From Bugula neritina (lineage: Eukaryota; Animalia; Bryozoa): a stretch of 64,000 nucleotides of DNA. This document shows, one piece after another, positions 1 through 64,000 of the stretch (position 1 is the first letter of the stretch; each line of letters opens with the position of its first letter). A model generated the notes under the pieces. It did no database searches, was not told the origin of the DNA, and saw only the letters and a program-made list of their open reading frames with translations. The stretch spans positions 32,859,504 to 32,923,503 of the forward strand of contig OZ037765.1 of assembly GCA_964035545.1 (NCBI GenBank), in the 5' to 3' direction. The position numbers were made by a program, and so were the translations under genes.

Positions 1-399
1 CAGTTTAGCTCATACTCTCCAGCAGAATTGTTAATGGGTAGAAAATTGAGATCCACTGTACCCATCCATCCGGATAAGCTTAAACCTGAACTCCCTGACC
101 ATGACTTATTCAAAAGGAGCAACGATCAGTATAAAGAGAAAATGAAAGAAAATCATGACAAAAATCCTAAAGTGCGCCCTCTTTTGCCAGTAAATAAAGG
201 AGACAATATGATGGTGAGAGATATGCAAAGAGAAGGCTATGCTGCCTCTTCTTCAGATAATATTACTCGTCGAACAAATGTCATGACTGACACTGGACCT
301 TTAATACGTAACAGAGCTGATATAACTAATATCCCAACACGATGTTCTGAGCGAACCAGAAAAGTGCCACGCTACTTAACAGATTTTGATTGTACATAA
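1..399 (+). mobile_element. pol: 3' end of LTR retrotransposon pol (integrase C-terminal tail), Gypsy-like; truncated by window start
   Basis: Reads SPAELLMGRKLRSTVP...RxSERTRKVPRYLTDF, typical of Gypsy-type integrase C-termini; followed by a polypurine tract and a TG-starting LTR-like segment. Confidence 0.7.
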
Positions 400-500
400 T
401 TTATTATCCACGCCTGTAATATAAGTTGCACTTGATTTAATTACTGTTGTCAAACCTTTTCTTTTGTGTGTTTTTTTTTTGGTTGTTGTAGCCTGAAACT

Positions 501-1667: not shown

Positions 1668-1805
1668 TCTCAGTCAGCTGACTCAGTTAGAGAGACTAGA
1701 CATAGGAGATAATTCTTTCAACACAGTACCAGAAGTTGTGTCATCACTCACGTCACTTAAACAGTTGAATATGAGTAGATGTGATATAGCCAGTCTACCT
1801 GAGAG
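1668..1805 (+). CDS. LRR cassette exon (138 bp, 46 aa, two 23-aa LRRs), gene 1
   Basis: ttacag|T...GAG AG|gtttct; LSQLTQLERLDIGDNSFNTVPEVVSSLTSLKQLNMSRCDIASLPE. Confidence 0.9.
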
Positions 1806-4800
1806 GTTTCTGTTTATTACTACTTTACAACATAGTTATTGCCTTCTTTTAATTTATATTTATACACAGCTTATAATATATAACATAATATGCAGTATAT
1901 AAAAGTTTAGCTCAAAATTTAGACTCAGTCTAAGTTTGTGGAAAAATACAATGGGATGTGAAGGGCGGAGTGTAATACGATATAAAAAGTTATCCTATAT
2001 CACTAGATAAAGGTGGATTATTATTTTGTGTCTACTGCAATATTAAAATACTACAGGATCTCAGCTATGCAAAAATTTATTACTGGGTATTCTGCTAAAG
2101 ATTTCATGGAAAAAGAATATCAGTTATAGAATATTATTAAGGAAAGCAATGACTTACATGAAGTACTGGTACCATCTCACAACTGTATTTTGTTACTCAC
2201 TATTATACATCGAGGGATGGTATTTATATTACTAAAAGAAAGAATTAGGGATGACAATATATCCTGACAATTTAAAATCCATTTACTGTTTCATTGATAA
2301 TTTTTTTACAAACTAGGAATCATTGTTATATAATTCTTTATTCTCTTGCTGTTGTATGCTTTGTATTACAGTTTCTCCCAGTTAACTCAGTTAGAGAAAC
2401 TAGACATAGGAAACAATCCTCTTAACACAGTACCAGATGTTGTGTCATCACTCACATCACTTAAACAGTTGAATATGAATAGTTGTGATATATCCAGTCT
2501 ACCTGAGAGGTTTGTGTTTATTACTATATTTTACAACATTGTTATTGCCTTCTTTTAACTTATATTTATACACAGCTTATAATATATATAACATAAGATG
2601 CAGCATATAAAAGTTTAGCTCAAACTTTAGACTCAGTCTAAGTTTGTGGAAAAATACAATGGGATGTGAAGGGCGGAGTGTAATATGATATAAAAAGTTA
2701 TCCTATATCACTAGATAAAGGTGGATTATTATTTTGTGTCTACTGCAATATTGAAATACTACAGGATCTCAGCTATGTACAATTTTATTACTGGGTATTC
2801 TGCTAAAGATTTCATGAAAAAAGAATATCAGTTATAGAATATTATTAAGGAAAGCAATGACTTACATGAAGTACTGGTACCATCTCACAACTGTATTTTG
2901 TTACTCACTATTATACATCGAGGGATGGTATTTATATTACTAAAAGAAAGAATTAGGGATGACAATATATCCTGACAATTTAAAATCCATTTACTGTTTC
3001 ATTGATAAATTTTTTACAAACTAGGAATCATTGTTGTATAATTCTTTATTTTCTTGCTGTTGTATGCTTTGTATTACAGTCTCTCCCAGTTGACTCAGTT
3101 AGAGGAACTAGACATAGGAGACAATGCTCTCAACACAGTACCAGATGTTGTGTCATCACTCACATCACTTAAACAGCTGAAGATGAATAGTTGTGGTATA
3201 TCCAGTCTACCTGAAAGGTTTGTGTGTCACATGTTTATTACTATTTCACAATATCATTATTAGTGATTTTTATACTATATTTAAATACAGCTTTTAGCAT
3301 AGTTAATAATAATATACAGGATACAGAGTGTAGCTATAATTTCAGCACTCAGCTGGAAATTCCTGTGTTATACAATGATATAGTTATAAGAGTAGAGTGT
3401 AATATAGAAATCCACCCTTAAGCATGGTCATGGATTAGAGCCAATGCCAGGATATTATAGTGATAAAATATTCAGTCATTTATAAAAAAACACAACATAT
3501 TTATTCTTGAAGTATCACGGTGCCGTATATAAAAGTTTATATTTATGCAAGTATTTTGTTAAGCATTTGATAAACATATATATTCCCTAGAGTTAGGGGT
3601 ACATGACTATGACTGTTGGTCACAGGTTAATAATGATGGAATAGTCATAAGAAGAGGTGTGAAATTAATACCTGCAGTAACAAATAGTTATAGCATCAAC
3701 TAGCTTTATTTGTCACCCATTTTAAAAATAAAAATAACAGCCGACTCCCTAATGTATATACTATGCATAGTAATGTATACTATGTATAGTGATGTATACT
3801 ATGTATAGTAATGTATACTGTGTATAGTAATGTATACTATGTATAGTAATGTACAATATGTATAGTTTGTTGTATACTATGTATAGTAATGTATGATATG
3901 TATAGTAGTGTATACTATGTACATATAGTAATGTATACTATGTATAGTGATGTATACTATGTATAGAAATGTATACTATGTATAGTAATGTATACTATGT
4001 ATATAGTAATGTATACTATGTATAGTAATGTATACTATGTATAGTAATGTATAATATGTATAGTAATGGATACTATGTATAGTAATGTATACTATGCATA
4101 GCAATGGATACTATGTATAGTAATGGATACTATGTATAGTAATGTATACTATGTATAGTGATATATACTATGTATAGTAATGTATACTATGTATAGTAAT
4201 GTATACTGTGTATAGTAATGTATACTATGTATAGTGATGTATGCTATGTATAGTAATGCATACTACGTATAGTAATGTATAATATGTATAGTTTATTGTA
4301 TACTATGTATAGTAATGTATGATATGTATAGTAGTGTATACTATGTACATATAGTAATGTATACTATGTATAGTAATGTATACTATGTATAGTAATGTAT
4401 ACTATGTATAGTAATGTATACTATGTATAGTGATGTATACTATGTATAGTAATGTATACTATGTATAGTAATGTATACTATGTATAGTAATGTATACTAT
4501 GTATAGTGGTGTATACTATGTTTAGTAATGTATACTATGTATAGTGGTGTATACTATGTATAGTAATGTATAATATGTATAGTAATGTATACTATGTATA
4601 GTAATGTATAATATGTATAGTAATGTATACTATGTATAGTGATGTATACTATATATAGTAATGTATATTATGTATAGTAATGTATACTATGTATAGTAAT
4701 GTATACTATGTATAATGGTGTATACTATGTATAGTAATGTATACTATGTTTAGTAATGTATACTATGTATAGTAATGTATAATATGTATAGTAATGTATA

Positions 4801-7800
4801 CTATGTATAGTGATGTATACTTATATATATAGTAATGTATATTATGTGTAGTAATGTATACTATGTATAGTGGTGTATACTATGTATTGTAATGTATACT
4901 ATGTATAGTGGTGTATACTATGTATAGTAATGTATACTATGTATAGTAATGGTATACTACGTATAGTAATGTATACTATGTATAGTTATGTATAGTAATG
5001 TATACTATGTATAGTGGTGTATACTATGTATAGTAATGTATAATATGTATAGTAATGTATAGTTTTCATGGTAATGTATAATATGTATAGTAATGTATAA
5101 TATGTATAGTAATGTATAATATGTATAGTAATGTGTACTATGTATAGTAATGTATACTAAGTATAGTAATGTATACTATGTATAGTAATGTATACTATGT
5201 ATAGTGGTGTATACTGTGTATAGTAATGTATACTATGTATAGTGGTGTATACTATGTATAGTAATGTATACTATGTATAGTAATGTATAATATGTATAGT
5301 AATGTATACTATGTATAGTGGTGTATGCTATGTATAGTAATGTATACTATGTATAGTAATGTATGTATGATATGTAAAGTGACAAAATGATCTACTAAGT
5401 CAGTAAACTATTTTATAAACTATGTGTATTTATATAAAGCTTTACCATTGCCTTTTTCTTAAATAGTATAATTGGCTGAATTGCAAGATTAGTTACTGGC
5501 GTATTTGTATTTATATTTATATAGTATTCTGAGCCTCTCAAACCTCCAACATCTGGACATCTCTAATGCAAGGATGACATGTTTACCTGATAACTTCCAC
5601 CAATTATCTAGCTTGTGGCGTCTTAACCTCAGTGGAAATGATACCCTAAAAGCTCTAACACCAGAGATAGCTGACATGCCTCCATTAATGTTAATAACTA
5701 CTCAGGGTTGTGAGTCATTGACTTCACCACCATATGAAGTTTGTCAACAAGGAGCAGGTGCCATCAAGCAATACTACACAGACATTAGAAACAGTGACAG
5801 TGTAGAGGTTTCCATGGTAACTTTTGCTGTCATTGGTCAGACTATGTCAGGGAAGACTAGTCTGATTAGGACACTACAGAGTACAGATAGAACCAGAGTT
5901 CTTACTCACAGAGTAGATGGTGGACTTGATGATGATACAACTCCTGTATTCAAAATGGAAGATGTTTGTGTAGATAATGATGTGCTGAGATTCATTGACT
6001 TTGGAGGTCATGAAATTTATCAGTCAACATATCGGTTTACTTTAAAGCCAAATTGTATCCCAGTTGTTGTTGTGAGTATTGAACAGTATGAAGACCTGCG
6101 GCATGATATTGGTGGTAATGAGGCAGTGAGGCGACTGTATTTTGATTGGTTGTCACATCTTTACCTGACCTATCCTAACCTTGGGCCTCCTAACTTGGTG
6201 TTGACCCATTTAGATAAAATTGATGAAAGCGAGCTCAAAGAGATTGAAGACAGTTTCTTTAGCCACACAAAGCATGTTTTTGAAATCGTCAGTCGCGATG
6301 AAAAGAGCAAGTGGAAGAATGGAGGTGCTTTTGCAAAAATTAAACATTTTGAAGCAAAGAATATGTTCAAAGCTGAAGATATTTATAAAGTTGGAAATTC
6401 TTACTGCGAAGCTTTCATACAGCTAAAACATAGACTGCTGAGAGAGAGTAAGCAGTTTGTAAAAGCAATACCAACAACCTGGGTGGAAGTTGAACAAGCC
6501 TTGAAGAAATTTGAAAAAGGTTACATGTCATTCCAAGATATCTTCAGCCAGTTGTCTAGCAGCATTTCATTAACCGAAAATCAACTTGACATCATCCTGA
6601 CATACATGCACAACTGTGGCATCTTGCTCTGGTACAAGAATGACAAGGATTTGCGTCTTTACATATTCTATCACATCCCCACAGTCACTTCACTCCTGCA
6701 AGTTCTGTTTACTCATGATGACACAGTTTGGCAGCGTCGTCTGTCAGATTTCGCTAATCCTACTTCTGCTGGTCAACAATTCCTCACACTAAATGAATAC
6801 AGTACGTTTGCTGAAAGATTTGCTTCAACAGGAATCATGCATGGTAAAATGTTCAAACATTTGTTAAGAACCGAAACAGACTTTCAAGAGAATGCTGCAA
6901 TGAGAGTTGCGGCTCAAATTTTGCTGTCATTCAGAATAATGTATCGCTCTACACTACAGAATGAAGAGAGCTCTTTCATTGTGCCATACTTCTGCAAGGA
7001 GTTCCTTAGTCACAGCTTACCTACCACAGGGAGTTGTGTCACCTTTCATGCTCAGCTACGTTTTGATGGTCTTCCACTTCCACAGTATGCCTACCACCAG
7101 CTTGCTGTGGACATAGTCAATTCTTTCTCTCAAGAGTCAGACTGCATAACAGCCAGAAATAATGGAGCTCGTGTGGTGAAGAAAGATGTAACCTATCAGC
7201 TGGTACATGACTACAAGTCAGGAATAGTAAACATGTGTGTTTCCTTTGACTCCAGACAAGTATGCAGAGCATGGGAAGTTCTGGTTGACATCACCAACTC
7301 CTCTATTGAATACATTGAGACCAGATGGTGTGCCTGTAAAATAGGATGTAAATTCTTCTGTGCTCACTGTGGGCTAGAACAAGACCACCACCCGTCTAGC
7401 CTCATGAATCCTTCCTGGGTCCAGTACCATGGCAAGAGATGGGCGCCCTTACTTCCTTCTTTCTTGCCTAATCAGCTCAGATGTAAGAACTTTTTTATTG
7501 TTTGCATTACTACTGCTAATTTAAGCAACTATCAACGTTAATTCTTTGAGCTGTGATGCTTCCTATTTACATTTATGTCGATTGTCCGACTTTAGCACAG
7601 CAGCTCAATGATTATGAAGATTTCAATGCAGAGCTTGACTACTTTAAATATAGACGTCTCTTCTCTAGCCACAGACATCACAATGTAAATTGGATTGCTG
7701 AATCAGCTGGTGGGAAGATATTCAGATGCAAGAAAGATTCTTCCACACCTTCATGTCTCCTCAACCCTTGTGAGTACTTTATACACTCATAATATAAAAA

Positions 7801-10364
7801 CGGTTTTGCAGTATCATTGCTTATACAAATTGTGTAGTGTTTCTGAACCTAGTTATTACATTTCTCAAAATTCACTAGTTTATTACCATAACATGTGTTG
7901 CAGGCTCCAGTTTGTCTGAAGAAGAGGGTGCATGTCTTTCAAGTTATCTCAGCAAATATCAAAGGACCAATTCTACAGGTACTGTATGTTCATCTTATTC
8001 TAGTAATTTTTGTTATAGTAACTATAGAAAGAATCTGAGTATGAAATAAACATATGCTCAGTGTGTGAATATTTAAAAACTCTGAATGTTTATGTATGTA
8101 CAACATATACCGTGATGTATTGCTATCAACAGTCTATAAAATGATGTAGCATACGATAATAATAAATTCAGGTGAGACTCATGTTGAATCTGATAATGAA
8201 GAAACTGATGCCGATAGTGATATCTCTGAACACGAAGACTTCAGCTCACCACAAGAAGCCGGTAACATCAAAATGGAAGTTTCTGAGACCAAGAAAAAAA
8301 AGATAAAACATCTGTTCTATTCTAATGAGGTACTTTAATAAATAGTTTATAGTTGTTAGGTATGAACTACATAGTTCAAATATTTTATTTATAAAGTATT
8401 ATTTGTGGTGAAATATCTTTCACTTATAAAAACATGTTGCTCTTTTGAGTATGGTAAATGCACAATAAGTTTTCTCTGCTTTCTACCAACCAGTTGAGCG
8501 CAGCTGAATTTAGTAAATTTAATTATAGAGTTCAGTTGCATTTATATTTTCATTGGTGCTGTAGAGTATTGCAGTGAAGGCTGTCTGCAAAATTCCATAA
8601 AATTATTCAATCTTATCAAACAAATAAGAGAATGATCACCAGTTGTTAAAAAAATTTTATAGGTGTATAAAATGAGTGAGACTGTGCGAGGAAGAGCTCT
8701 GATTATCAACAACAATGTTTTCCGTGATAGACCCGAGCTCTATAGAGAAGGATCTGCAGTGGATGTGTCTAATATTCGAGCAGTTTTGGCACATTTGAAC
8801 TTTGAAGTAGATGTGAGACGTGACAGAACTGCTGAGGTGCCCAAACATATAATGCCATATTTTGTTATACTTGTAAACATTAGACATTTCATATTATTCC
8901 TATATACTATATTTAATCTCATGATTTATTCACAGGAAATGCTGAAGGATATCAAAGATGAGACTCAAAACCCTGACAATGAAGACTATGGTATGCATGT
9001 CACTGTACTCATGTCTCATGGTGGAACATTTGGTGCTCATGGAGTTTTGTATGGAACTGATGTGAAACCAGTGAAGCTTCTCAATGTCTTTGATTTGTTG
9101 TCTTCCGACAACTTCAAGCACATGGCTGGGAAACCTAAAGTTGTGATCGTGGTAGCTTGTAGGAGTGGTGAGTTGTACATATATCTCAACGCTATACTCA
9201 TATATCATGTAAATTTTTATAACGCTTGAAAAGTTTACAGCTCTCCAAATGACATGTTTTATTGTCTTTCTATATGAATAAACTATTATTTTGCTTATTT
9301 TCATTTAAAATTTCTTGTATCTTATTTCTGTACTATAGAACACTAAACCTTGTATTTATCCCAGCAGACAGATACAATAGATAGAGTAGTGCTTCTTTTA
9401 CATTCATAAAATATATTTATTGGAATGTGTAGCTGCCACAGATGCCCTGATAGAGAGAGTAGAGGCTGAGTCTGGAGAGAGTTCCACCAGACAGGAAACT
9501 CAACAGGAAACTCAACGGAAAACTCAACAGGAAACTCAACAGGAAACTCAACAGGAAACTCAACAGGAAACTCAACAAGAAACTCAACAAGAAACTCACC
9601 AAACTACAAGCAGACGGAATGACTTGAATGTTGATGATCTGTTGATACTGCAGTCGTGCTTTGATGGTAAATCTTTGTGCTACTTGTAACTGATGATACT
9701 GTGTAGTATATGTATCTATATGTTGGTAGCTGTAGAAATTCTCTGATTAGCTGTTGAGGTTTAGACTATTATATAATTTTTCTTAAAATAGGAATACTGC
9801 AATATTACTTTCTACAAAACTCTTAATTTATAAATGCCTCATAATTTATGTTTTCTGTTGTTGCTGACCATTAAGGTTTATCATGTAGTTTAAGCCTAAA
9901 ATGTAGAGCGTGTGCAGTTATGTATCTGAAGTATATTAGTGTCAGGTCAACTCTTTCAAACAGAGAAGAAACTATTTTTTCAGGTCGAAACTCTATAAGA
10001 GATGCAAACTATGGAAGTCCATTTATCAGAGAGCTGGTTAAAACTCTGTACAAACATTCTTCTCATAGAGATCTTGTCACTCTGTTTGATATCGTAAGTG
10101 TGCAATATTAGTCTTTGGTACAGATACTGAGAAGTTTCCAGATGTCTCCTGGTATAAGAGATTCAGAGATGTACAGGTGTTCTATTAATCTGATAAACTG
10201 GTACCTTGTTACAGGTGCAAAAAAGAGTTAAGAGAGTCACTAAAAAGATCTCTGAGACACGTCCGGAATTTTCTGAGCAGGTGCCGATAACAACAAAGAC
10301 TCTCACAGACATGAGGAAGATTTTCTTATTTCCTAAACACAAGATCTCTTCTCCTGCCGAATAG
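1668..10364 (+). CDS. Gene 1: LRR-ROC-COR-caspase fusion protein (Roco GTPase + caspase), 5'-partial. Exons 1668-1805, 2372-2509, 3080-3217, 5525-7482, 7596-7769, 7904-7978, 8172-8329, 8663-8836, 8936-9167, 9433-9666, 9984-10093, 10215-10364
   Basis: All introns GT-AG with compatible phases (2,2,2,1,1,1,0,0,1,1,0); joined frame is open for 1225 aa to TAG at 10362-10364. LRRs, ROC G1/G3/G4 motifs, COR and caspase p20/p10 motifs occur in order. Confidence 0.85.
2372..2509 (+). CDS. LRR cassette exon (138 bp), gene 1
   Basis: ttacag|T...AG|gtttgt; FSQLTQLEKLDIGNNPLNTVPDVVSSLTSLKQLNMNSCDISSLPE. Confidence 0.9.
3080..3217 (+). CDS. LRR cassette exon (138 bp), gene 1
   Basis: ttacag|T...AG|gtttgt; LSQLTQLEELDIGDNALNTVPDVVSSLTSLKQLKMNSCGISSLPE. 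Confidence 0.9.
3751..5366. repeat. 19-bp minisatellite (consensus gtaatgtatactatgtata), ~85 copies, intronic
   Basis: Direct tandem periodicity with scattered substitutions. Confidence 0.95.
5525..7482 (+). CDS. Large exon of gene 1: final LRRs, ROC GTPase and COR domain
   Basis: LSNLQHLDISN / LSSLWRLNLSGN / LTSPPYEVC (LRR cap); G1 GQTMSGKTS (5835-5861), G3 IDFGGHEIY, G4 VLTHLDK; COR motifs IPTTW and LTYMHNCGILLWY; C-terminal FCAHC...HP resembling the MFHAS1 tail. Confidence 0.9.
8663..10364 (+). CDS. Caspase (peptidase C14) domain exons of gene 1
   Basis: VYKM..RGRALIINN, REGSAVD, MSHG (His codon 9017-9019), GKPKVVIVVACRS (Cys codon 9158-9160); p10 DLLILQS..G..SIR...GSPFIRELVKTL..DLVTLFDIV..EQVP...LTDMRKIFLFP. 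Confidence 0.9.
9490..9600 (+). repeat. Coding 12-bp minisatellite (caacaggaaact; QQET x ~9) in the caspase intersubunit linker
   Basis: Tandem 12-mers in frame within exon 9433-9666. Confidence 0.9.
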
Positions 10365-21080: not shown

Positions 21081-23545
21081 ATGTCTTTAAGTAAGTAGCA
21101 TATTGGTCTTTTAAATACATTATAAAACTCCTTCTTCTTTGCAAAGTAAAATTTCTTTCATTTTGATTAGTTTGTGAAAGTGACAACATATGAAAAGCAC
21201 AAACCAGGTTTCACATTTTGTGCCAAATAATTGAAGTAAACATTGTTATAATGCATTCGTAGCATAGATTTTTACAAATTCAGTTTTTGCACAGATATTT
21301 AATTAAATTAGAAGACATTATATATACAGTATATCATTAAAAAATTCAGCACATGAAAAATATTCTCTAAACTCTGATGCCTCATTAATATATGTTATAT
21401 AAAGATTTTGCAAGTTTCATGAAGGGAAAAATTCATGCTTCAGGGAAATATTGCGCACTTGCATCTATATTTTAAATTTACAAATTTTGAAACTATTTTA
21501 TAGTTTTTAATTTAGAGGTGTGAGAGTAGCAGTTCAACATAACATGTCTGTAAAGACATGCTGGTAGAGCTGTACATATAGCATTGCCTGCTGTTGCTGC
21601 ATAAAACGATCTTTTTGGTTCATAAAATGAATGAGTTGGGTTTCAGCAGTTGGGCAGTGTTGACGCACCAAAGTTTGTATAATATAAAATATACTCTAAC
21701 CACTTTTGTCATAACATCAGCTGTTGCTTCAGGTTGAATATTGTCTTGTAAGTTTTGACTTTTACACACACCTGTCGATGAAAATATCTACAACTATGCA
21801 TTGTTAACAGGTAATTGATAATTGGATATCAATTAAACCATCATAGCCCATTTATTGAACACCTAACTTAAAGTTATTTGAAAATATAAATTTATATATT
21901 AAATAAATAAAAACTATTAAATCTATATAGAGGTGTATACTCTAACACAATTAATTTGCTGGGATGTAAGTTACCTAATTCCAATTTTTCGGAAACTTGA
22001 ATATTGACTTCACCGTTTTAGATACATTTTAACCAATTTTCGCCGTAGCTAAGCCATATAAGGGTGCTTATCAGAAAGGTTATAAGGCTAACGCTGTCGT
22101 AATCATAAGCCAATGACATCAAGTTAACACATTTGCTGGTAATATTAACTACATGTATAGTGCGTGAACTTGTTACAACTTAATCTCTACTGCTACAGAT
22201 GATACCTAAACCGTTTTTAGGGAATTACATCTAATGTATATATAAGGTTTAAAATTTTTTGTGGCATTTTCACGAATGCAGGCATTTACAATTTTTTTAT
22301 CTAATAATTTTAGCAAAAGATATAAAAAGTGGAATTCCTATATCTACCTTAATTATCAGTCGAAGCTCAAAGTTAGCAAAGCATGCCTTAGCTGTTCAGC
22401 TTGTTAGAAGCACCGGATATAACGTGACAAGTTTATTAGACAACATACTGGCAGCTTTCCCTACTGGTACTGGCAAAAACATTCTCGCTGAAATAAACAT
22501 TATTTGTAAAATTTTGTTAAAACTTTCAACCACAAAGCAAGATGCTCAACCTATTTTACCAACAATAGCTTGGGATCAGGAGCATAATGTCTTCACTGGA
22601 GTTCCAACGGGGTCCAGAGTTAGCCTGACAGATTTCTCACGAGATGAGCTCAACTCTGTCTGCTCAGGAATCTTGTCATTTGAAGATGTCATACTTCAAG
22701 CTCTACCTAATGTAGAAACACAAACACTGCTAGAACAATCTGGAACAAAACTGAGATCCAGTGAACCTACTGAGCAGAGAAAAGCAATAGAAGATTTAGT
22801 AGCTGGTTTTGTCAGAGAAATTTTAGAAAAATCAGAACTCCTCTTTGCAGAAATGGTGGAACTCCTAAACAGATATGGTTTGTCAGAGTCGGATAAAAAT
22901 AAATTGGAAAGTATCTGTCAAATGGAAAGCAATCTAAAGACAGGTACAGATCTTTTCCCTGGCGAACAAAAAAGACAAGAATTGGTGACAAGCTACAAAA
23001 TGTGTGTAGAAGTCTTGGTTAAAGAGCTGAGATGTCTCACATTTGCAGAACAAATCAAGGTAATTATTATAGATATACCTATTTCGATATGGATAAAAAG
23101 TGAAAAAAACAACACTATTAAAAAATTGAGTTAATAGCGCTTACTTTATGCACACAAGTAATAATTTAAAGCATGGTTTATTTTAAGATTATATCATACT
23201 AAATAAATGTTACACTTGACTTAATAATGACCCACTATAACTTGGCAGTTTTACTATGACTATAATATGCTCCTAACTATATTATCTTCTGTTTCAGATT
23301 ACTGATGACTACTTACAGCTGAACCCAACTGCTAATGAGCTCAAAATCATCATTTCACAATATGACAGGTACATAACAACATCACAACATAATACATAAA
23401 GAATATTATGATAGTCTAGTAAGGCAAGTTTTAGCAAGTGTATATTAATTTCTTTACAATGATTCATTTTGGCTGTTTGCAGACTGATCGAAAAAAACAA
23501 GTGTCACGATGAAGAGGGTAGAAAAAGGATAAATCTTCTAGCCAG
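21081..23545 (+). CDS. Coding exons of an uncharacterised helical protein region, probably the 5' part of gene 2: 21081-21090, 22314-23059, 23298-23368, 23483-23545
   Basis: aacatcATG TCT TTA A|gtaagt splices in phase 1 to tttag|CA AAA GAT; 746-bp open exon; later exons GT-AG and phase-compatible (0,2,2); no family recognised. Confidence 0.7.
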
Positions 23546-23814: not shown

Positions 23815-26800
23815 CATGACTGACCGGCGTACAGCTGGTGCCGACTCAAGGTCTCCGTAGGGCGGCCATGTTTACTAGCCTGGCAGACCTCGCACAGCCG
23901 TATTCACAGTCTTACGTCCCGAGTCAGTCCAGGCCAGTACCACTGCAGCCGTAGACATCTGATGACCCGACGAACCCCAGCATGGGCTTGTTTGTGGGTG
24001 TCCCTGATCAGGTCCCGTCGGAGGGCACACGGGCATACAACAAACTCCCTCTCCTAACGACGGTTGTCTGCTGCGAGTGATATGGTGAGTAGACCATCTT
24101 CGCTGACCTTGAGGGAATCTCAGCTGCTACAGAGGTGTCGGTGCTCGACGTCCCCCTGCTGCTGCTGCTCCTTGGTAGGTCGGCGGCCGTCCCTCTTGGC
24201 CCGGAATATGTCTGCTCTTGTTTCTGCCTGCGTCTGCTAGAGCTGGCTCAGCTCCTTGACGCTTTGATACTTTGTGGGGTTGGCTTGTAGAGCGTTGACG
24301 ATGTCCGGTAGGTGTTCTGACCGAAGGCGGCCGTGTTGCCAACTGTAGACATCGTCGTGTCCTGGCTGCTTCTTCTCGTCAAAGCGGGCTGGTCCTCTGT
24401 CCCGTCTCTTGATGTGTAACCACTGTTTGCAGTTTTGCTCCAACTGACGGCTCATCCCATCGACGTTTCCATGCTTCTTCCCAGCACAATGTTCTATCCT
24501 ATAGGAGAACTCAGCAAAAATCTCCAGCTAACTAGCCCCCTAGCTCAAAGGCTCTGTACAGTTATACAGCCATATCAGAGATGCATGGTCCATTCATAAC
24601 CTGAACATTCTCCCATACAGGTATGGCCAGAAGTGCTTGACCGCCTTGACTACTGCCAGGAGCTGCTTCTTGGTAGTGCAGTAGTTCTTCTTGGCAGTCG
24701 AGAGAGTCTTGCTGTAGAAGGCCACTACCACCTGAGTCTCACCCTGGACTTGTGACATAGCAACTCTCACATTGTGGTCACTGGCGTCGATGTCCAGGAT
24801 GTACTCTTTGGCTGAGTCGGAGTATGCCAGGATAGGCGCCTCTATCAGCCGACTCTTGAGGTGGTCAAACGCCTGCTGCTCCTTCTGTGTCTAATGCCAC
24901 TGGACTCCCTTGGCGGTTAGACGATTCAACAGCTGTGCCACCCTTGCAAACCCGGGAATATACTGCCTGTAATACCTCACCAGGCCCAGGAATGCTCGCA
25001 ACTCAGAGAGATCTTGGGGGACATTCTACTCTTCCACAACCTGCACCTTCTCTAGGTTGGTAGCAACCTCGTTACGGTAAACTACATGACCCAGGTACTT
25101 GACCTCTGGCTGTAAGAGTGCACACTTGGAGGACTTCAGGTTCAGCCCGGCAGTCCAAAGACAATTAACGAGCTCCCACAGACGACTGACATGAGTCACA
25201 AAGTCTGGGGAGATACATATGACATCACCTGAATAGATGAGCAGGATCTTCCTGTGCAATCCACTGAGGACCTGCTCTATGAGTCGTTGGAAGGTTGTCA
25301 GGGCAGTTGTTAGTCTGAATGGCAGTCAGTACGTTCCATTTCCAGAGCCCGGCGCGAGTGATAAATGCTGCCTTGTCCTGTGCATCAGGACTGAGGGACA
25401 CTTGCTAGTACCCACTCAGCATACTAAAAGTACTAAAGTACTTGCTTCCCATGAGGGCAGCTAGAGACTCATCTATCCGAGGAAGGGGCTAAGCATCCTG
25501 GGTGGAGTCACTGTTGAGTTTGCTGTAGTTTACGCAGAACCTCCAGCTACCATTTTTCTTCTTGACCAGAACTACTGGAGAACTCCACGCACCGTGGGCA
25601 GGCTCAATCAAGTCCACATTAAAAAATCCTGCACTTGTCTGCTTACTTCCTTCTTCTCCATTCCCAGTCGTCAAGTCGGCTGCCTGATGGGAGTGGTCCC
25701 AGCTGCCAAGGGTATCTCTTTACACACTGCCTTGGTCAGCTTCATACCCTCATCTCCATAGCTGAAGACATCACTGTAATCCAGGAGTAGTCAAGCCAGC
25801 TCCTGGAATTCGGCACTGCCATTACAGTCCCCGCAGGCTTCATCATACAGGTCAGCCACATACTCCGGTACCGTTGCCCGACTGGCCCAAGGGGGAATTC
25901 TTTGGGTGTCGGCTACTGTCTCCAGTGCCAGCCACAGATCCGCTTTAGGGATAGAGTGGTATTTCCCCATCAGGGCGCCAGCCGGTAGTTTGATCTGCTC
26001 AGACAAAGGGTTGATGCATTGTACAAGAGGTTTTCCCTGGCAGTCTAGCCGATTCAAACTGTTTGCCAATTGAATTTTCCCTGGCATCTTCTCCACCAGT
26101 CGCAGTGTGGCTATCTTCTTGCAGCTAGCTTTGCAGCACAGGGTAGCCTGGGATCTTCCGGATACCATGCAGTCCTGCACTACTTGGACTCCGCCCACCA
26201 AGGGCCTGCCAAACTTTTCAATGCAGACAAGTTCCTTTCTAGACATCACCAACTCCGGATTCTGGAAATTCATGCGACACTGGTGTTTCTTCAGAAACGG
26301 CTTGCCCAGAATAGCGTCCTCCTTCAGGTGACTGACTATGTCGAACAATATAGTTAACTCCGAGGAGGTTGGTGCAGGTTTAGCAACGGCGACTACTTGG
26401 GCCTCTTCCTTAGGTGTGTCCTCCACTTGACTCGCCGTAAAGTCTGCTCCATGGGAGGTGTCTACTCAATAGTAGGACCATCCCAACTCTAGAGCCTCTT
26501 CTATAGTAAAGTTCATGGCAACCAGGTAGTACTTCTGGAGTCCCTCATTGCTCACTGTCCTGAAGAAAGCCCCATAGACCAGCTCTCGCTGTGCCTCTGG
26601 ATCGGTTCAGCTGTATGCTATTAATGCCAGTTTTTCTATGGCCTTTGCATGGTCCTGTAGAGAGGTCCTTCTGTCTCTCCTCATGCTCTGTAGCTTGTCC
26701 CTAGCATCTCTGGTGGTCATATCAAATCGTGCTCAGAGCGCCTGAAAGATGTGGTAGATATCATCCCCGAGCGCATAGCTCTTAGCTTTTCCAGTCAGGC

Positions 26801-27490
26801 AGGACCGTAGCTGTAGAAGACGTACCGGTCCGACCATTTGGCGAAGGTAGCCACGTCTTTGATTTTCCTTATAAACTGTTTGACATTGCTGTCGCCTTCA
26901 AAAATCAGAGGCTGAAAGCGATACCTGTCACCAGGTGGCGCCGGGATGACCAAGCCGGCTTCTCGGAGGGCTGTTACTGGGTTCTCTAGTGTGAGAACCT
27001 CTCCTCCTTTTTCTATCCCCACCATCTGGCATTTCTCACTATCTCTTGTAAGGCTTCCTGATTATTTGTGATCCCACCGCTGCCACCAATGTAGTAACTT
27101 GTGGGTTATTGAATTTTATTAGGCCGAGAACATAACTCCTCGTCAGAGAAGCGATAATAGAGTGTTGAGTAGTGTGTGCTGTATAGTATTTATTGGTGTA
27201 GTTGATTCTTCCAGTCTGAGCTCCTGTCTTCAGCTGACTGGAGCTCAAAATGTGCCTCCTCTTATACTTCCCAGACAAAGGGTTCTAGAACATTCGACCA
27301 ACAATCGGTCAAAGTTCGGAAATGTCGGGCTTAGTATTCCGACATTCAAAATGTCGGAGTTCGACATTCGGAATGTCGGCAAGCCAGCAAACCAAACTTC
27401 GGTCAACTGTCAGTTTACATGAATCAGCAAAATTTAACCCAGTCAAGTGCATTAAGATTGTAACGTGTATAAGGGGAAGTACTATTCAAT
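23815..27490 (-). mobile_element. Decayed Gypsy LTR retrotransposon, same lineage as the element at 37774-45281
   Basis: Frameshifted gag (DRYRFQPLIFEGD..QFIR), protease-linker (KEDAILGKPFL, KFGRPLVGGVQVV), RT (AWSSPVVLVKKKNGSWRFCV) and RNase H remnants; tRNA-Leu PBS atcccaccgctgccacca at 27071-27088; LTR from 27090, right edge approximate. Confidence 0.9.
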
Positions 27491-28399
27491 AGTTAATAGT
27501 GATACTATTATGTTAAAATGTAAGTCATGTGTTCTTGTACTGGCGTGTCAAGGGGGTAACTCTAATATTTATCACACAGGTTCCTAAAACATGAAATCAT
27601 GATTTGACCTTTGTTTTTAAGCAAGTCAACCTAGGTATCCATGATTAGGTTTCAGCTGACAGTTTTTAACATTTAACTTTTAAGCCAGCAGCGCTGGCAC
27701 TTTGTAAAGTATAAACAAAGGCAGAGTTGATGAAGCGAGACTAACAAGCTCTCAAATACAATGTAATGAGATAATGTACAATATTAAGTCAAGAGTATTT
27801 TGTGTAGAACTAAAGCTGCCTTCCCACAAAAAGTTTGAAAGCCATGTCAATAGTTTCCATAAATAGAAAGCTAAATAATGAGATTAGATCAACCTTATTT
27901 TGAAAAGGAGTACAATTTAGGCTATCGGTTGAATACCCACTCTAGAAAATCTCCCACAAGTCACCTAAATTAAAAGAGTATAGGGCTTTTGTGATCCAAC
28001 TGGGTTAAACATATTAATTTAAATTGATATAATTTCCATCGCCTTTGTATTGCATGAAGTACAAAATTTAGATGTCACAGAGATCATGTGAAAATTGCAC
28101 TATTTTAAAATATTATTGAGCTACAACGTGAATGCGAAAAGGATGCCGTGTTGCAATACATGCAGCCTATGATGAATGCTATTCATTTACCACAGACGCT
28201 GAGTAGACCGTAAAGTTCAACATTGACTGCACTAAAAATTATAATGGAAACAGGTGCAGCCCTAGTAGATTAGCTGTTTATTGGTCATAGCTAAACCTTA
28301 TGCTATACCATAATTAGTAGGCAACATGCATACCACCCACAAAGAAATCTTAATAAAGAACTAAGACTACAAATTCATGATAGTCATGCAGAGGATGCC

Positions 28400-28955
28400 C
28401 TTAACTATCCTGTGTAAACATCGGCCACTACTCCAGGCAAAATTTCCTAGAGTTTACGTAGCTCATTGACGTTTACGGCCATGACTGGGATAGTGTGGAG
28501 AGCACTAACAGCGTCAGCAGAATTGTCAGACACAAGTTGACCATGCTTCCAGCTGTAACCGCCTCTGGATTCAGACCGTACCTCCATGTCAGAAAGGCAG
28601 GGCCTCGTCTCTCTTTTTTAATATTTAGAGACTGTCTGCACCCTCCTTCCGACCGCTGGCTTAGCCCATCCGCATTGAGGTGTTTCTTCCTGTGGCGATG
28701 TTCAGTCTGGTAGGAAAACTTGGCCAGGATCTCAAGCCACCATGCAACCTGGCTGGAGGGTCCAGCTCTCTTGCACAACCAAATCAAAAAGGCATAGTCT
28801 ATCTGTAAGCAGAACATCCTTTCATGCAGATAAGGTGGAAGTGCTTCATGCACTGCCTTGATTACTGCTAGGAGCTCTTTTTTGGTGGTGCAGTATTTCG
28901 TCTTGGCGGCAGAAAGAACCTTGCTGAAGTAAGCGACGACCACCTCCCGGTCATC
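28400..28955 (-). mobile_element. Gypsy pol fragment (RNase H/linker)
   Basis: VVAYFSKVLS..YCTTKKELLAVIK, LIWLCKRA.PSSQVAWWLEILA, NADGLS match the pol at 39472-44103. Confidence 0.85.
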
Positions 28956-37773: not shown

Positions 37774-38078
37774 TGTTAAGATTTTCAGATTTAGGGTTGA
37801 TGTGCTATCCAGAGAGTCTATTTATTTGCTATAGAACTGCACCAGGATAAGTCGAGTGAACGAGTATATTTTACACACAATTATACATTATAAAAACGAT
37901 ACATTATATTCAAACAAGTTACACATCTAATCTATTTGACACTCTAGCTTCGACTGCCTTAGCAGCGGGAAACTATAATTGCTGCTAACTATCAAACACG
38001 CTAATTGGCTATCCATTGTTCCGGGTCAATTACGCGACCCTACATGTTGTGCTGCTGGCAGTTCCACGAACCACCACA
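37774..38078 (-). repeat. 3' LTR
   Basis: Direct repeat of 44977-45281. Confidence 0.97.
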
Positions 38079-38369
38079 CCGCCCCCACCAGCAGAAAGCC
38101 CTCTTTCTGATATATATATAAAAAAAACATTCATTAGTAATCGCATACATCAGTGGACAAAAATAATACATAATATACAGGAAGAGACATAATAATAGGC
38201 AGAGTCATTATAACGATCCGTTACATACAATTGACCAGCTGTAGATAGACGAGGAATACCAGCTAGCTGTGGTGTTAGACAGGGGATAACCTGTTAAGCA
38301 GTCAAACATTTACATGACATCTTGGTTTCCCCCAAGAGGCGAAGTTGTGGAGTATTCCGGGTAGCCTAA

Positions 38370-39447
38370 CTAGAGTCCTTGTTGGGCACGCCGGTGCTTG
38401 GCTTGGCATGTACGCAGTTTCCGTTTCATACGGCATACGGATCCCTTTAGCTGGAAGAGTCCTGTTGTAGTGTTAAGTAGATCTGGTGCCAGCTGGGTGA
38501 ATTCTTCTTGTAATCGCAGGAGGCGTTCTTCTACTGTGGCTAGGCGGACTGGGTCTGGGGACGGTGTCCGTCTGCGGCGCAAGGGGGGACTGGGGGACCT
38601 GGTTCGTCTCTTCGTCGGGGTAGGGGAGATCTCTCCTTCTTCTGGATATGTGAACTCCTCGGGGGTGTATGTAATCTGAGGGCGGTCAGACACCAACGGG
38701 GATTGCTGGCGGGCGTTGTCTAATACACGTTGGAACCCCGAGGACAGAACGGCTAACAGCATGGCCTTCTTCACCAGGGGTCGTATAAGTGTGAGGAACT
38801 CCGGGTATAGCTTAGCGTCGACCACGTAGTTTTCTCCAGGGAAACAGCCCGTCGCTCGATGTCGGGTGACGGGGTAGGGATACACATCATTGTACCCGCA
38901 GGGGCAGAATGTTAGTAGGAGATGAGCATTGACGTGTAGTTTAAGGGAGCGGTGAGAGGCGCATTCTTCACCACAGATCTGGCATCTCGTCCGTGCTCTG
39001 GACCCCCAGGCCGTTTCTATTTCTTCTTCTGTTTGTGGAGACACCCACCGCCAACGGCGGCGTAGTGGCTCAGGCCGGTCACCACTAGCATACTCCTCCG
39101 GATGCGGAGCGGGAAGTGTTCTATCCCGTACCCTGGTTGTAGCGGGTCGAGTGTAATCTGAAAAAGTTTCAACAGTGTTAATACAGTACACTGCCGTGTT
39201 GTCAGCTTGAATAGCTTGGCAACTCCTAATTCAGTTACCTCGTAGAGATTTATGGTAGTGAATAGTCAGATAGAACACGTAATGCAATGAGATTATAAAA
39301 ATCTCTAAGTCAAACTGAGTTCTTACTACGGTATTTCACTAACCTATCTCCAGCTCGATTGACTCAGTGAGTCAGAGCTGAGCGATGCAATCTAGTTTCG
39401 TATTAAGATATAGTTAACTCACCCCACGATCTGTTGTCGTAAGACAT
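38370..39447 (-). CDS. Retrotransposon third ORF: zinc-finger/RS-rich/coiled-coil protein; proposed exons 39447-39423 and 39157-38370
   Basis: CQICGEECASHRSLKLHVNAH (C2H2), CPCG..HRATGC, RRTRSPSPPLRRRRTPSP, terminal heptad helix; main ORF lacks a 5' ATG but has a ttttcag acceptor in phase with an upstream ATG micro-exon ending G|gtgagt. Confidence 0.65.
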
Positions 39448-39471
39448 ACTGAATGTGTGAAATGGTTTGAA

Positions 39472-42400
39472 CTACTGCTTAGAAACACGTCTACTCCTGA
39501 CTGCATCAGCGTATGAAAAGATCGAGCAACGTGGTTGGGGTGCGTGATTAAGACTTTGTGCACCCGGCGGATGAATTTTGTTTCCATTTCCGCCGATACA
39601 AAAGTTGATATTTCCGTGGTGTTGACAACTCCCACATTTGCTCGATACTTTTCTCGTACGGTTTTCCCCTAGACTTTCATACACGCCGCTTTTAACGCAG
39701 TCGCATATGAAGTCCTTCAAGTATGCGGGGGGTTGCCTCGTACGCTGTCCCCTTTCTAGGGGGGGTGACACGCTTGCTGGTTCGTTAGTAGGGGCCTCTA
39801 ATGGCGTCTCTACTTCACCGTTGGCGGTCACCTCTTCTTGTTCTCCGGATGGAGCCCCTCCCTCCGTGGGGGTTTGCACTTCCGGAACCGGTTCGGTTTC
39901 TGGAAGTGATGGAATTAGACTTGGCGGTGGCGGACACGCTTCTGTTGGTAAAAGCTGCCGCTCCTCTCTCACCAAGTTTTCTTCCTGCGGTATGACCACT
40001 TCGTATTCGGGTCCATTCCGCCGTCGCCCACGCGTTGTTGTCTGCCTCCTGGGCTCTAACAACGGGGGGGCTTCTCCCACTCCGTCGGGGCTAGCCCAAT
40101 ACGGTTTCAAGCGAGACTCATTCTGGATAGACACCTGTCCTGAGCGCTCAATCTTGTACGTATGATTGGGCATAGCCTCGACGACCACGTAGGGGCCTAC
40201 GAACTTAGGCTTCAGTTTATCAGCCTGTCCGCGACGCCTACGGTAATTGACCATCCACACCTTATCTCCCATTTGATAGAGAGGTGGTTCATCGGAATTT
40301 TCGTGCCGCACCTTCCACTGCTGTTGGCGCAGTATATCGTGTGCGGCCTTCATCCGTTCCACTAGTTCACTGGCATACTCGTGAACCGAGTTGTCTTGCT
40401 CTGGAACGTGATAGGTGAGATGGTCAGGGACACGAGTCTCTCTCTCGAGCATCAAGAGGTTTGGGGTCTCACCAGTACTGGTGTGTGGGGTGCTACGGTA
40501 TGCACGCATGACTTGCGGCAACACCGTATCCCATTCCTCTTGACCTCGTCCAAGGAGAAGACTCCGGAGTGCATCACCTAGCATCCGGTTGTTGCGCTCC
40601 ACCACCCCGTTACCTTGAGGGTGGTAGGGGGTGGTCCTGCTCTGATTTACCCCCCAGAGGTGACAAAGGTCGCTCATCAGTTGAGACTGGAATTGAGCGC
40701 CTTGGTCAGAGTGTATCTGTTCGGGGAGCCCAAAATAACAGAATACATGTTGGTCTAGCGCCCTGGCCACTGTTGGGGCTGACGCATCTGGAATAGCCAG
40801 AGCATCCGCCCACCTAGTAAAGTGGTCGGTTAGTACTAGGATCCAATTATTGCCTCTGGGGGTCAGGGGCATGGGTCCGACCAGGTCTACAGCGACTACT
40901 TGCCAGGGCCTACCAGCATATAGCCTCCGCCGTCCTGCTTCACCAGGGGGGCGGCTATGCTTACTGGCCTGGCAGATCTCACACTGTTTGACTCTGAGCC
41001 GGACGTCACGCTCCATTTGTGGCCAATACCACCGGAGTCGTAATTTGGACATCACTCGCTTGACCCCTGCGTGGGCCTGTTTGTGAGTATCCCAAATCAA
41101 CTCACGGCGGATGGCTGTGGGGCAGACTACCCTCTTCCTCTCCGGGTGTCTGCCGCTGGCGGCTAGAGAGATGGTTAGTAACCCATCCTGCCCGATCCGC
41201 AGCGAGTCCCAACGCTGACAGTATAGCCGGAACTCGGCGCATCCCTGTCGTATGCGTTCCTCGCTGGGTCGTCGCCCTTCCCTTTTGGCCCGGTATATGT
41301 CTGCCACGACTCCAGGCAGCTCTTCTTGGAGCTTCTTCAGCTCCCGAACATTACCGGCCAGTACAGGGTTGGCGCGGAGGTTTTGTACATCCTCCGGGGA
41401 CTCATCAACTCTTTGCCTGAGTTGACCTTGGTCCCAGTCAAACGGTGCTTCGTGGTGAACCAGCGTCTCCAACTCGCATCGCGGGGGACCTCCATCCCTC
41501 CTCTCGATGTTGAGACACTGTTTGCAACCTCCGTCAGGTCGGCGACTCAGCCCATCCGCATTGCTGTGTCTCTTGCCCGGTCGATGTTCGATCCGGTATG
41601 AGAATTCAGCTAGGATTTCGAGCCACCGGGCGACCTGACTAGAGGGCTCTGCTCTCTTGCACAACCAGATCAGCGAGGCATGATCCGTACGCAGCCGGAA
41701 CTTCCTGCCATATAGGTATGGTCTGAAGTGCTTCACTGACTTGATTACTGCCAGCAGCTCCTTGCGGGTAGTGCAGTAGTTTCGTTCAGTGGGTGAGAGA
41801 GACTTGCTGTAGTAGGCTACTACTACTTCTCGGCCTTCCTGCACTTGTGACAGCACAGCGCCAACATTTTGGTCACTGGCGTCCGTGTCGAGGATGTACT
41901 CCAGAGTGGGGTCTGGGTAGGCCAAGATGGGCGCCGTTAGTAGGCAGCCCTTGAGGCGGTCGAACGCTTCTTGTTCGACTGGGGTCCACTGCCACGTCAC
42001 TCCCTTTTCGGTGAGCTGGTTTAACGGCTGTGCTATGCCCGCAAAGTCTGGTATGTATTGCCTGTAATACCCTACCAGCCCCAAGAAAGCCCGGAGTCCG
42101 GTCAAGTCTTGGGGGGTGACCCAGTCTTCTACCGCCCGTACCTTTTCGGGATCCGTTGCCACGCCGTTTCGACCGACAACGTGCCCCAGGTACTTGACCT
42201 CCGGCTGCAATAGAGCGCACTTAGAAGGCTTGAGCTTAAGACCGGCACCTCGGAGTCTCTCAAAGACCTCCTGCAGACGACTGACATGTGTCTCGAAGTC
42301 TGGGGAGATCACGATGACATCATCGAGGTAGATCAGCAGTGTCTTCCAATGGAGCCCGCTGAGGACTTGCTCCATCAGCCTCTGGAAGGTGGCCGGGGCG

Positions 42401-44103: not shown

Positions 44104-44945
44104 AAACTGACTGTTTCTCCCTGTGGCGGCGCCGATGGCCGCATGGGCTCAGGGGCGGTACTCACTGGGTTTTGTGGTGTCAGTGTTGCTATCAGCTTGG
44201 CTAGCATGTCTGTCAGTTGAGTGACTTTCGATGCCGTCGCCAACTGGGACACGGCAGCCGCGGCGGGGGTTTCCTCCCCTTGTCCCGCGGCCGTGTCTGC
44301 GCGGTCTATCTCCACTTGACGGGAGCTTCCGCGATTTTTATGCATTTGATTAGCTAGGAGGTAAGCTTCCCCCTCAGTCAGAGCATCTTCAACGGTGGTG
44401 ACTCCCCTAGCTAGAAACTGGTGGTGGAGACCCAGATCGTCGACAGATGCTATGAAAGCGTCGAGGGTATACCTCTCGCGGTTGACTGGGGGCAAGTCGC
44501 TGTACGCGATCTGTGCCAGCTTCATGATCGCGGCGGCATGCTCCCGCAGCGGGGTGCGGGGATCACGCCGCAACCTCTGCAATCGGGCCCTGGCATCTGT
44601 AGCAGGGAGGCCGAAGCGGGCCCGCAGAGAAGCAAAGATATTATCAATGTCTACGCCCAGCCCATAAGGCTTGGCTTTGTCCATCAATGCCATTCTAAGC
44701 TTCAGCAAGGCCACCCTAGGGGGCCACTGGGCGACGTCCATTACGTCGCTAAACTCTTGGATAAATTGTTCCACCTCCTCTTCACCCGTGAAGGTGGGCG
44801 CCTTTAACCGGTAGCGGTCCTCAGCTAGTTCTCGCGGAACCCTTCGCTCTTCTACTACATGGTTAACAGGCATTGTCTCTACAGCATTGTCTCTACGCTC
44901 ACCTTCTATTGCCGGTGGTTGAGTTCCAGCATTTTCAGTCTCCAT
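43992..44945 (-). CDS. gag: Gag
   Basis: 317 aa upstream of and overlapping pol; CCHC knuckle CWECGNQGHFRRYC. Confidence 0.93.
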   Translation of the reverse strand: METENAGTQPPAIEGERRDNAVETMPVNHVVEERRVPRELAEDRYRLKAPTFTGEEEVEQFIQEFSDVMDVAQWPPRVALLKLRMALMDKAKPYGLGVDIDNIFASLRARFGLPATDARARLQRLRRDPRTPLREHAAAIMKLAQIAYSDLPPVNRERYTLDAFIASVDDLGLHHQFLARGVTTVEDALTEGEAYLLANQMHKNRGSSRQVEIDRADTAAGQGEETPAAAAVSQLATASKVTQLTDMLAKLIATLTPQNPVSTAPEPMRPSAPPQGETVSFCWECGNQGHFRRYCPFLNQGLNYRGPQMFPPPAGRR

Positions 44946-44957
44946 CTTGGATGCACT

Positions 44958-44975
44958 ATCCCACTGCTGCCACCA
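44958..44975 (-). promoter_or_regulatory. Primer-binding site (tRNA-Leu type, TGGTGGCAGCAGTGGGAT)
   Basis: 1 nt from the 5' LTR, begins TGG, complementary to the eukaryotic tRNA-Leu 3' end. Confidence 0.8.
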
Positions 44976-44976
44976 C

Positions 44977-45281
44977 TGTTAAGATTTTCAGATTTAGGGT
45001 TGATGTGCTATCCAGAGAGTCTATTTATTTGCTATAGAACTGCACCAGGATAAGTCGAGTGAACGAGTATATTTTACACACAATTATACATTATAAAAAC
45101 GATACATTATATTCAAACAAGTTACACATCTAATCTATTTGACACTCTAGCTTCGACTGCCTTAGCAGCGGGAAACTATAATTGCTGCTAACTATCAAAC
45201 ACGCTAATTGGCTATCCATTGTTCCGGGTCAATTACGCGACCCTACATGTTGTGCTGCTGGTAGTTCCACGAACCACCACA
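44977..45281 (-). repeat. 5' LTR
   Basis: Direct repeat of 37774-38078. Confidence 0.97.
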
Positions 45282-63295: not shown

Positions 63296-63399
63296 GTTTG
63301 TGTGTCACATGTTCATTACTACTTCACAACATCATTATTACTACTCTCTAACTTATATTTATACACAACTTATAGTGGGGCCATTTTACTTAATTTAGT

Positions 63400-63755
63400 A
63401 GACACTCAAAATCTCCAGTTTTTAGCTACTTTTCACAATTTGGCTGCTAATTTATATAGGTTTTTACCCAAAACTAACAAAATGTTAACAAAGACAACTA
63501 AATATTTCAGGTTCTTTTTAGTTTTGCTTAGTTTTCCATGTTTTTCCCCAATTGTTTAAGTAATTTGGAGCTTCGAACCATTACAAAAATTCTGTGACAG
63601 TCCGCAAATCTAAGTTAACTGATTAAATGGGGAAAAACATAGGAAATCAAGCAAACTTAAGAAGAACCTGGATTATTTAGTTGTATTTGTTAATATTTTG
63701 TTAGTTTTAGGCAAAAACCTATAATAAAAATTAGCAGCCAAATTGTGAAAAATAG
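63400..63755. mobile_element. Foldback MITE with ~130-bp inverted arms in an LRR intron
   Basis: ttttcacaatttggctgctaattt...tttttcccca (63430-63549) is the inverted complement of tggggaaaaa...aaattagcagccaaattgtgaaaa (63628-63752). Confidence 0.8.
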
Positions 63756-64000
63756 TGTTGTAGTTTAGCGGATTACTACAAGTGTGGTGTTATTGTGTGC
63801 TTAGACTGCTAGAGCATAGCCCTGCTACGAGATTTACTTGAGAATCGAGCAGTGGTTGAGATTAGTTGACAATTATATTTATGATACTAATTACAAACCA
63901 AGTCACATCCAGTCAAAAAGACATACAAAAGAAAAAATATATATAGTAGTACAAGTAAGGAGCTTCGCACGGTATATCTGCATGGAACGAATGAATGCCC
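63756..64000. mobile_element. Possible start of another LTR interrupting the foldback element
   Basis: Abrupt switch at tgttgtag where the MITE right arm stops early; no partner LTR visible. Confidence 0.3.

Follow-up and report, generated by a model that had tools for sequence, protein, structure and literature searches.

A spliced and conserved LRR-ROC-COR-caspase gene in the bryozoan Bugula neritina: anatomy, relatives and a proposed one-chain mode of action

Background

Can a repeat sensor, a nucleotide switch and a caspase be carried by one and the same protein chain? This question is raised by a Bugula neritina locus at positions 1668-10364 (+ strand) of a 64,000-nucleotide stretch of AT-rich animal DNA (the window, to which all coordinates refer), which had been predicted from its sequence to encode an LRR-ROC-COR GTPase fused to a complete caspase. 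The activation of initiator caspases by induced dimerisation is established, with the details under debate. Whether Roco proteins are active as monomers or as dimers is still debated as well, which bears on LRRK2 and Parkinson's disease, and a natural Roco with a dimerisation-gated protease output would report the Roco cycle directly. Bryozoan immunity is little studied, and a 2019 review of Roco proteins nowhere mentions caspases. To judge the locus, gene structure, RNA contigs, domains and relatives were combined; Pfam searches were run exon by exon and the AlphaFold model covers exon 4 alone.

Results

Gene model

The spliced model of the window consists of twelve AG/GT-bounded exons (Table 1) that join in phase, as predicted, into 1,226 codons with zero internal stops. 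It is 5'-incomplete: position 1668 is a splice acceptor and a start codon is absent, so the gene begins upstream of the window; a search of window positions 1-1667 gave no N-terminal exon. Downstream of the stop, AATAAA occurs at 10592 and 10753, and contigs extend to 10399. The closest named protein is KAF6026298.1 from B. neritina (82% identical, the locus being 88% identical at the DNA level); after B. neritina, Watersipora subatra is the next closest relative.

Table 1. Exons of the LRR-ROC-COR-caspase gene, its motifs, and other elements of the window
Feature	Position	Strand	Description
Exon 1	1668..1805	+	LRR cassette, two LRRs of 23 aa, 138 nt, phase 2-2; first visible exon, not gene start
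Exon 2	2372..2509	+	LRR cassette, 138 nt, phase 2-2; Pfam LRR match
Exon 3	3080..3217	+	LRR cassette, 138 nt, phase 2-2
Minisatellite in intron 3	3757..5364		19-bp unit, 84 copies
Exon 4	5525..7482	+	Last LRRs, ROC GTPase, COR-A, COR-B, CAHC
ROC G1	5835..5861	+
ROC switch-I Thr	near 5940	+
ROC G3	5997..6011	+
ROC G4	from 6204	+	THLD
CAHC	7359..7370	+	COR tail
Intron 4	7483..7595	+
Exon 5 (bridge)	7596..7769	+	Contig joints, open in L004; profile match weak, E 0.056
Exon 6 (bridge)	7904..7978	+	25 codons; contig joints 7769>7904 and 7975>8169; open in L004
Exon 7 (bridge)	8172..8329	+	Acidic linker, 29% D/E
Exon 8	8663..8836	+	p20 start; Pfam C14 2e-8; S1-pocket Arg in REGS (8744)
Intron 8	8837..8935	+	99 nt, in frame, stop-free
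Exon 9	8936..9167	+	Catalytic His and Cys; Pfam C14 5e-11
MSHG	9011..9022	+	Catalytic His
Cys codon	9158..9160	+	Catalytic Cys
Exon 10	9433..9666	+	Intersubunit linker, candidate cleavage Asp 9441, p10 start
Linker repeat	9491..9598	+	12-bp unit, nine copies, QQET-type
Exon 11	9984..10093	+	p10; second S1-pocket Arg in SIRD (9992-10003); family caspase profile E 5.6e-13; contig joints
Exon 12	10215..10364	+	p10 end, stop TAG
Putative gene	22259..23500	+	Large exon (291-aa ORF, no Pfam match), then short exons
Young LTR retrotransposon	37774..45281	-	305-bp LTRs, 99.7% identical
Extra ORF of the LTR element	38370..39191	-	273 aa, no Pfam match
pol ORF of the LTR element	39472..44103	-	Protease, RT, RNase H, integrase
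gag-like ORF of the LTR element	43992..44945	-
Older retrotransposon fragments	1..400 and near 25800..28900
Second paralogue, 5' part	59200..64000	+	Extends past window end
Probable N-terminal exon of second paralogue	61191..61423	+	Weak match to N-terminus of Watersipora protein P0180, E 0.001
LRR cassette exons of second paralogue	61630..63295	+	Starts at 61630, 62242 and 63158

Two introns deserve mention on their own. Intron 4 is absent in Watersipora and in the B. neritina paralogue L003 (described below); its donor GT sits within an apparent Cys codon belonging to an R-C-K motif, and this motif is seen again where exon 5 ends. A recent gain of the intron, adding about 40 residues, is thereby suggested. 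Retention of intron 8 would insert 33 residues into p20. A minisatellite like that of intron 3 is also present upstream of the large exon in L003 and in L004, a genomic relative.

Domain anatomy

Pfam, fold and caspase-profile results agree with the predicted order of LRRs, ROC, COR, Cys tail, acidic linker and caspase. Exon 1 is a cassette of the same type as exon 2, the segments 1652-2517 and 2355-3225 form a tandem duplication of exon plus intron (94% identical), and an LRR-exon end is joined to 5525 in contigs (loose ends at 5523 in runs X4 and X6). On exon 4, Pfam Roc scores under its curated cut-off (E 8e-4), COR-A directly after ROC scores above it (2.4e-10) and COR-B gives no match; G1, switch-I Thr, G3 and G4 of the ROC domain are all kept across 56 relatives. 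The AlphaFold (AF2) model of exon 4 adopts an LRR-ROC-COR fold (pLDDT 88, pTM 0.88), which Foldseek matched over its whole length to LRRK1 (1e-21), CtRoco (2e-19) and LRRK2; LRRK1/2 dimer and tetramer structures are its top matches, and CtRoco 6hlu/3dpu and COR 3dpt are matched as well. By its motifs and modelled fold, the predicted gene product is a Roco protein, ROC being followed by COR. In the post-COR Cys cluster, the third conserved Cys lies in exon 5 and the fourth arises at the exon 5/6 junction, as it does in Watersipora.

For binding nucleotide the gene has a Ras-like ROC domain, not a NACHT or NB-ARC ATPase (Pfam, Foldseek). Neither a protein kinase domain nor WD40 and ARM domains (Pfam) were found in the visible exons or in the full-length relatives from Watersipora, and no death-fold (CARD/DED) match was obtained by Pfam in exons 4, 5 and 7, exon 6 being a mere 25 codons long. 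The gene is a Roco with a caspase domain, and not an NLR, LRRK, DAPK or plain MFHAS1.

As predicted, the caspase is complete in its parts: p20, intersubunit linker and p10 are all present in exons 8-12, which, searched singly, tile positions 1-274 of the 278 of a family caspase profile that itself matches caspase-3 (about 1e-54) and caspase-9 (about 1e-51). The catalytic His and Cys align to those of caspase-3. The predicted ACRS, however, is part of a non-canonical active-site motif, VACRS(A) instead of QACxG, with Val in the place of Gln and Ser in that of Gly; both S1-pocket Arg are kept and the S1-pocket Gln is missing. Relatives have QACSG or QACGG (Watersipora copies) and QACRG (amphioxus), and L004 carries VACRS as well. 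The 12-bp linker repeat of exon 10 is far longer in L004, where it is unfinished at the contig end, which indicates that linker length is polymorphic. Candidate caspase sites occur in the exon 7 linker, e.g. EETD/A at 8207.

One spliced message

Exons 4 and 8 are separated by a stretch with 29 open phase-1-to-0 candidates, so that the in-phase AG/GT chain is weak evidence and the bridge between COR and caspase rests on RNA and homology. The three bridge exons have exactly the predicted coordinates and are all crossed by a 671-nt contig (run X4, record 12) that aligns as 7334-7479 > 7600-7769 > 7904-7975 > 8169-8327 > 8661-8775; instead of stopping before 8663, this message continues to 8775. 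The predicted continuity from 7482/7596 to 8329/8663 is thereby seen in a contig that differs from the window by 47 mismatches in 590 listed letters (92% identity), so that it may represent an allele or close paralogue rather than the exact locus. At this identity, it shows a fused message for the subfamily and not strictly for the window locus. A second, more divergent contig likewise connects the COR tail to the caspase, single junctions were seen again in runs of three more studies, and the 7596 acceptor is in use in contigs of four studies. The 9167>9433 joint does not occur among the contig alignments listed, and depth over that intron is zero in all four runs. Run X4 is labelled RNA-Seq and the other three runs were guessed to be RNA, yet their contigs skip introns; contigs are mostly 90-99% identical to the window.

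Moreover, all three bridge exons are in place and open in L004, and the acceptor of exon 8 is one that Watersipora and amphioxus have at the same position and in the same phase. The bridging contig, the conserved bridge exons and full-length homologues lead us to reject an annotation artefact made of two adjacent genes.

Selection and LRR diversity

Compared with L004, dN/dS is 0.25 for ROC, 0.35-0.37 for COR, 0.18 for caspase exon 8 and 0.07 for caspase exon 9, and all of these are under purifying selection; in the bridge exons synonymous changes relative to L004 are too few for purifying selection to be demonstrable. Six 138-nt LRR exons are present in the window, three in the gene and three in the second paralogue. 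Their variation lies mostly on or beside the ligand-facing concave surface, with pN 0.236 and pS 0.190 at concave positions and 0.082 and 0.149 elsewhere (counted pairwise over the six exons, which are not independent). Exons 1 and 2 have diverged further (87.7% identity) than their duplicated introns (96.5%; Fisher p = 1.5e-4); the same comparison for exons 2 and 3 gave no significant difference (p = 0.06).

Relatives and origins

The original prediction knew of no animal protein of this architecture that has been characterised. Indeed, no functional or experimental study of an LRR-ROC-COR-caspase fusion was found in the open literature, but the architecture itself is known: full-length versions are annotated in Watersipora (including XP_067947674.1 and XP_067948342.1, under RefSeq names such as 'MFHAS1 homolog'), at least 11 are present in Branchiostoma (e.g. 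C3XQ16) in the public RefSeq/UniProt sets, and it is listed for bacteria. Amphioxus, sponge and bacterial versions exclude a bryozoan-only novelty. The fusion is real, spliced and conserved, and not the first of its kind.

In public annotation such loci are often broken up into separate gene models. The paralogue L003 (B. neritina draft VXIV02002306.1, 12354-13089) has altered reading frames in its caspase exons 8 and 9 and is annotated as two genes; it may be a pseudogene or reflect assembly errors. Another one-chain design is seen in protein P0171 (ENA), which combines an LRRC8 pannexin-like membrane region, LRRs and a caspase with QACRG.

In Rocos of the amphioxus clade the C-terminal slot is also taken by GT4, OTU or Death, interleaved with caspase forms in the tree, and one Lingula Roco has a C-terminal CARD. 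Animal LRR-Roc-COR proteins with a C-terminal OTU, Death, GT4 or CARD are P0099, P0105, P0112, P0119, P0120, P0122, P0067 and P0114. To go by these domain combinations, the bacterial theme of a Roco with a variable effector appears to be present in animals too.

Bryozoan ROC-CORs form a single long-branched clade. A joint bryozoan and amphioxus ROC-COR clade was rejected (AU p = 0.006, in a quick tree whose long branches call for caution), so that the two fusions may be independent, and a single origin with amphioxus finds no support in ROC-COR. Bacterial-type ROC-COR sequences, most of them labelled by similarity and not by taxon record, make up their own branch (SH-aLRT 100), and the ROC-COR of the window groups with animal sequences. 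The introns, the animal-type caspase and the tree lead us to reject a bacterial origin or contamination. Five introns within or directly ahead of the caspase are common to the window, Watersipora and amphioxus in both position and phase; the same positions presumably also match caspase-9/2 genes, which suggests an initiator-type donor, may show no more than recruitment of the same caspase type, and is no proof of a single fusion. Exon 11 found no amphioxus match in pairwise BLAST and did match in the profile search.

Discussion

Proposed mechanism

We give about an even chance to the reading that the gene encodes a one-chain receptor in which dimerisation of COR activates the caspase and the GTP-bound state is OFF. 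The product would be a cytosolic pattern or danger receptor, contained in a single chain and belonging to an expanded bryozoan family. At rest it would be a GTP-loaded monomer with its tethered caspase monomeric and inactive. Ligand on the LRRs, or GTP loss, would move ROC to the GDP or empty state, upon which a COR-COR dimer would form and two tethered caspases would meet in the manner of initiator caspases, without a CARD/DED adaptor. The dimer might then cleave its own intersubunit linker at the candidate Asp, and perhaps also the tether at the EETD/A site, and substrate cleavage would drive cell death or defence signalling. Of the original prediction, the fusion, its spliced message and the idea of a self-contained sensor-switch-protease are supported; ligand binding, dimer activation, proteolysis and every other step beyond the anatomy are what we infer, and an immune function is suggested by analogy.

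The polarity is favoured by two published observations: the Roco of C. tepidum is a dimer with GDP or when empty and a monomer with GTP (PMC5714945), and the toxicity of human MASL1/MFHAS1 is raised by GTP loss (PMC3995007). In a model of a Watersipora homologue, not of the window protein itself, both modules are folded and the 40-aa tether is disordered (pTM 0.63), an arrangement more in keeping with proximity activation than with a fixed allosteric contact. The CARD, Death, OTU and GT4 found in the C-terminal slot of other animal Rocos are effector or caspase-recruiting modules, which also fits. Against the model stand VACRS, which has neither the Gln of the S1 pocket nor the Gly of QACxG, and the consideration that another brake would be needed if the GDP/empty dimer is the default state.

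Alternative readings

We think it rather improbable that polarity is NLR-like, with ligand leading to GTP loading and to a higher-order or membrane-bound assembly that clusters the caspases, in the style of LRRK2 on Rab-coated membranes. The LRRK1/2 dimers and tetramers among the top fold matches would suit such an assembly, and in STAND receptors the nucleotide triphosphate state is ON. However, the best-studied kinase-less Roco is monomeric with GTP (PMC5714945), and the window protein is without the WD40 and ARM that LRRK2 uses for such assemblies.

The replacement of QACxG, which Watersipora and amphioxus caspases retain, together with the frameshifted caspase exons of the draft paralogue, could point to a protease of weak or altered specificity or to a decoy, either tuning active paralogues through COR heterodimers (cFLIP-like) or serving as bait for pathogen enzymes. 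We regard this as unlikely given the retained His, Cys and both S1-pocket Arg, the recurrence of VACRS in L004 and the low dN/dS of exon 9.

Input from self, be it in allorecognition among colonies or in the programmed degeneration of polypides and metamorphosis, would suit a colonial animal and the high allelic or paralogue diversity of the contigs, and apoptosis has been cited in bryozoan allo-incompatibility (Kaur 2021, PMC8195603). Yet the visible part of the protein, from which the N-terminus is missing, has neither a signal peptide nor a membrane segment, which makes cell-surface recognition unlikely, and the same design in the solitary amphioxus and in bacteria indicates invader sensing; we consider self input quite unlikely.

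Finally, it is very unlikely that the locus is not one protein, so that the Roco would terminate at the read-through stop 7541 or behind one of the bridge exons, the caspase would be silent or encoded separately and the bridging contigs would stem from paralogues, for although the 92% identity of the bridging contig, AATAAA motifs in introns 6 and 7, the commonly split public models and a bridge depth below that of ROC-COR (depth being no measure of expression) would allow it, every splice site and frame is intact, four studies use the 7596 acceptor, and the caspase acceptor is shared with Watersipora and amphioxus.

Returning to the dimer-activated, GTP-OFF receptor, such a protein would reveal that animals can get from sensing to caspase activation by means of a GTPase and without an adaptor, in parallel with NLRs and bacterial Roco-effectors. 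More tentatively, and with rather more doubt than confidence, we propose that the main intracellular immune repertoire of bryozoans could be Roco- and not NLR-based, comprising dozens of one-chain receptors with cassette LRRs and a GDP/empty dimer as ON state, and originating independently of amphioxus and bacteria. Roco-plus-effector proteins would then make up a third class of death receptor that recurs in animals.

Comparison with known systems

Classical initiator caspases have a CARD/DED prodomain, of which none is seen in exons 4, 5 and 7, and LRRK1/2 and DAPK1 have a protein kinase domain that the gene lacks. The LRR-ROC-COR core is common to the human kinase-less Roco MFHAS1/MASL1, to which Watersipora relatives are likened by RefSeq name, but MFHAS1 has no C-terminal enzyme (PMC6337361) where the gene has a caspase after COR. 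Brown-algal ROCOs (Teng 2024, PMC11378527) are likewise expanded LRR-ROC-COR proteins with LRRs on separate exons, and are candidate immune receptors whose LRR exons are shuffled and under diversifying selection, a pattern that the variation of the LRR exons in the window resembles; they have no caspase and one LRR per exon, whereas each 138-nt exon of the gene holds two.

NLR inflammasomes and the Apaf-1/caspase-9 apoptosome share the combination of repeat sensor, nucleotide switch and proximity-activated caspase, a likeness of working only. In the predicted adaptor-free NLR analogue the polarity of the switch is probably wrong, CtRoco being monomeric with GTP (PMC5714945). The gene has a GTPase in place of a STAND ATPase and its caspase in the same chain, and it probably forms a dimer and not a ring, probably with opposite nucleotide polarity.

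The sponge protein XP_019855546.1, listed as AP-GTPase+COR+DED+TRADD-N+caspase (Kaur 2021 supplement, PMC8195603), also holds Roco and caspase in one chain, but with DED and TRADD-N in between and no LRR listed. The Branchiostoma proteins (such as C3XQ16) have the same four-domain order and the five shared intron positions and phases, and differ in that their LRRs are encoded by a single uninterrupted exon and QACRG is kept. Amphioxus LRR-caspase 'shortcut' proteins leading from recognition straight to apoptosis were already proposed by Zhang 2008 (PMC2575513), in a text that makes no mention of ROC-COR; the gene models behind them may be these Branchiostoma proteins.

In bacterial conflict systems, LRR+AP-GTPase+COR proteins carry at least 24 effector types including caspase (Kaur 2021, PMC8195603), and LRR+AP-GTPase+COR+caspase proteins, e.g. 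OQX07365.1, are given in the supplement of that study. They resemble the gene in the order LRR-ROC-COR-caspase-like effector, in several paralogues per genome and in a proposed counter-invader role, whereas the gene is spliced, has a true metazoan p20/p10 caspase and carries a ROC-COR that groups with animals.
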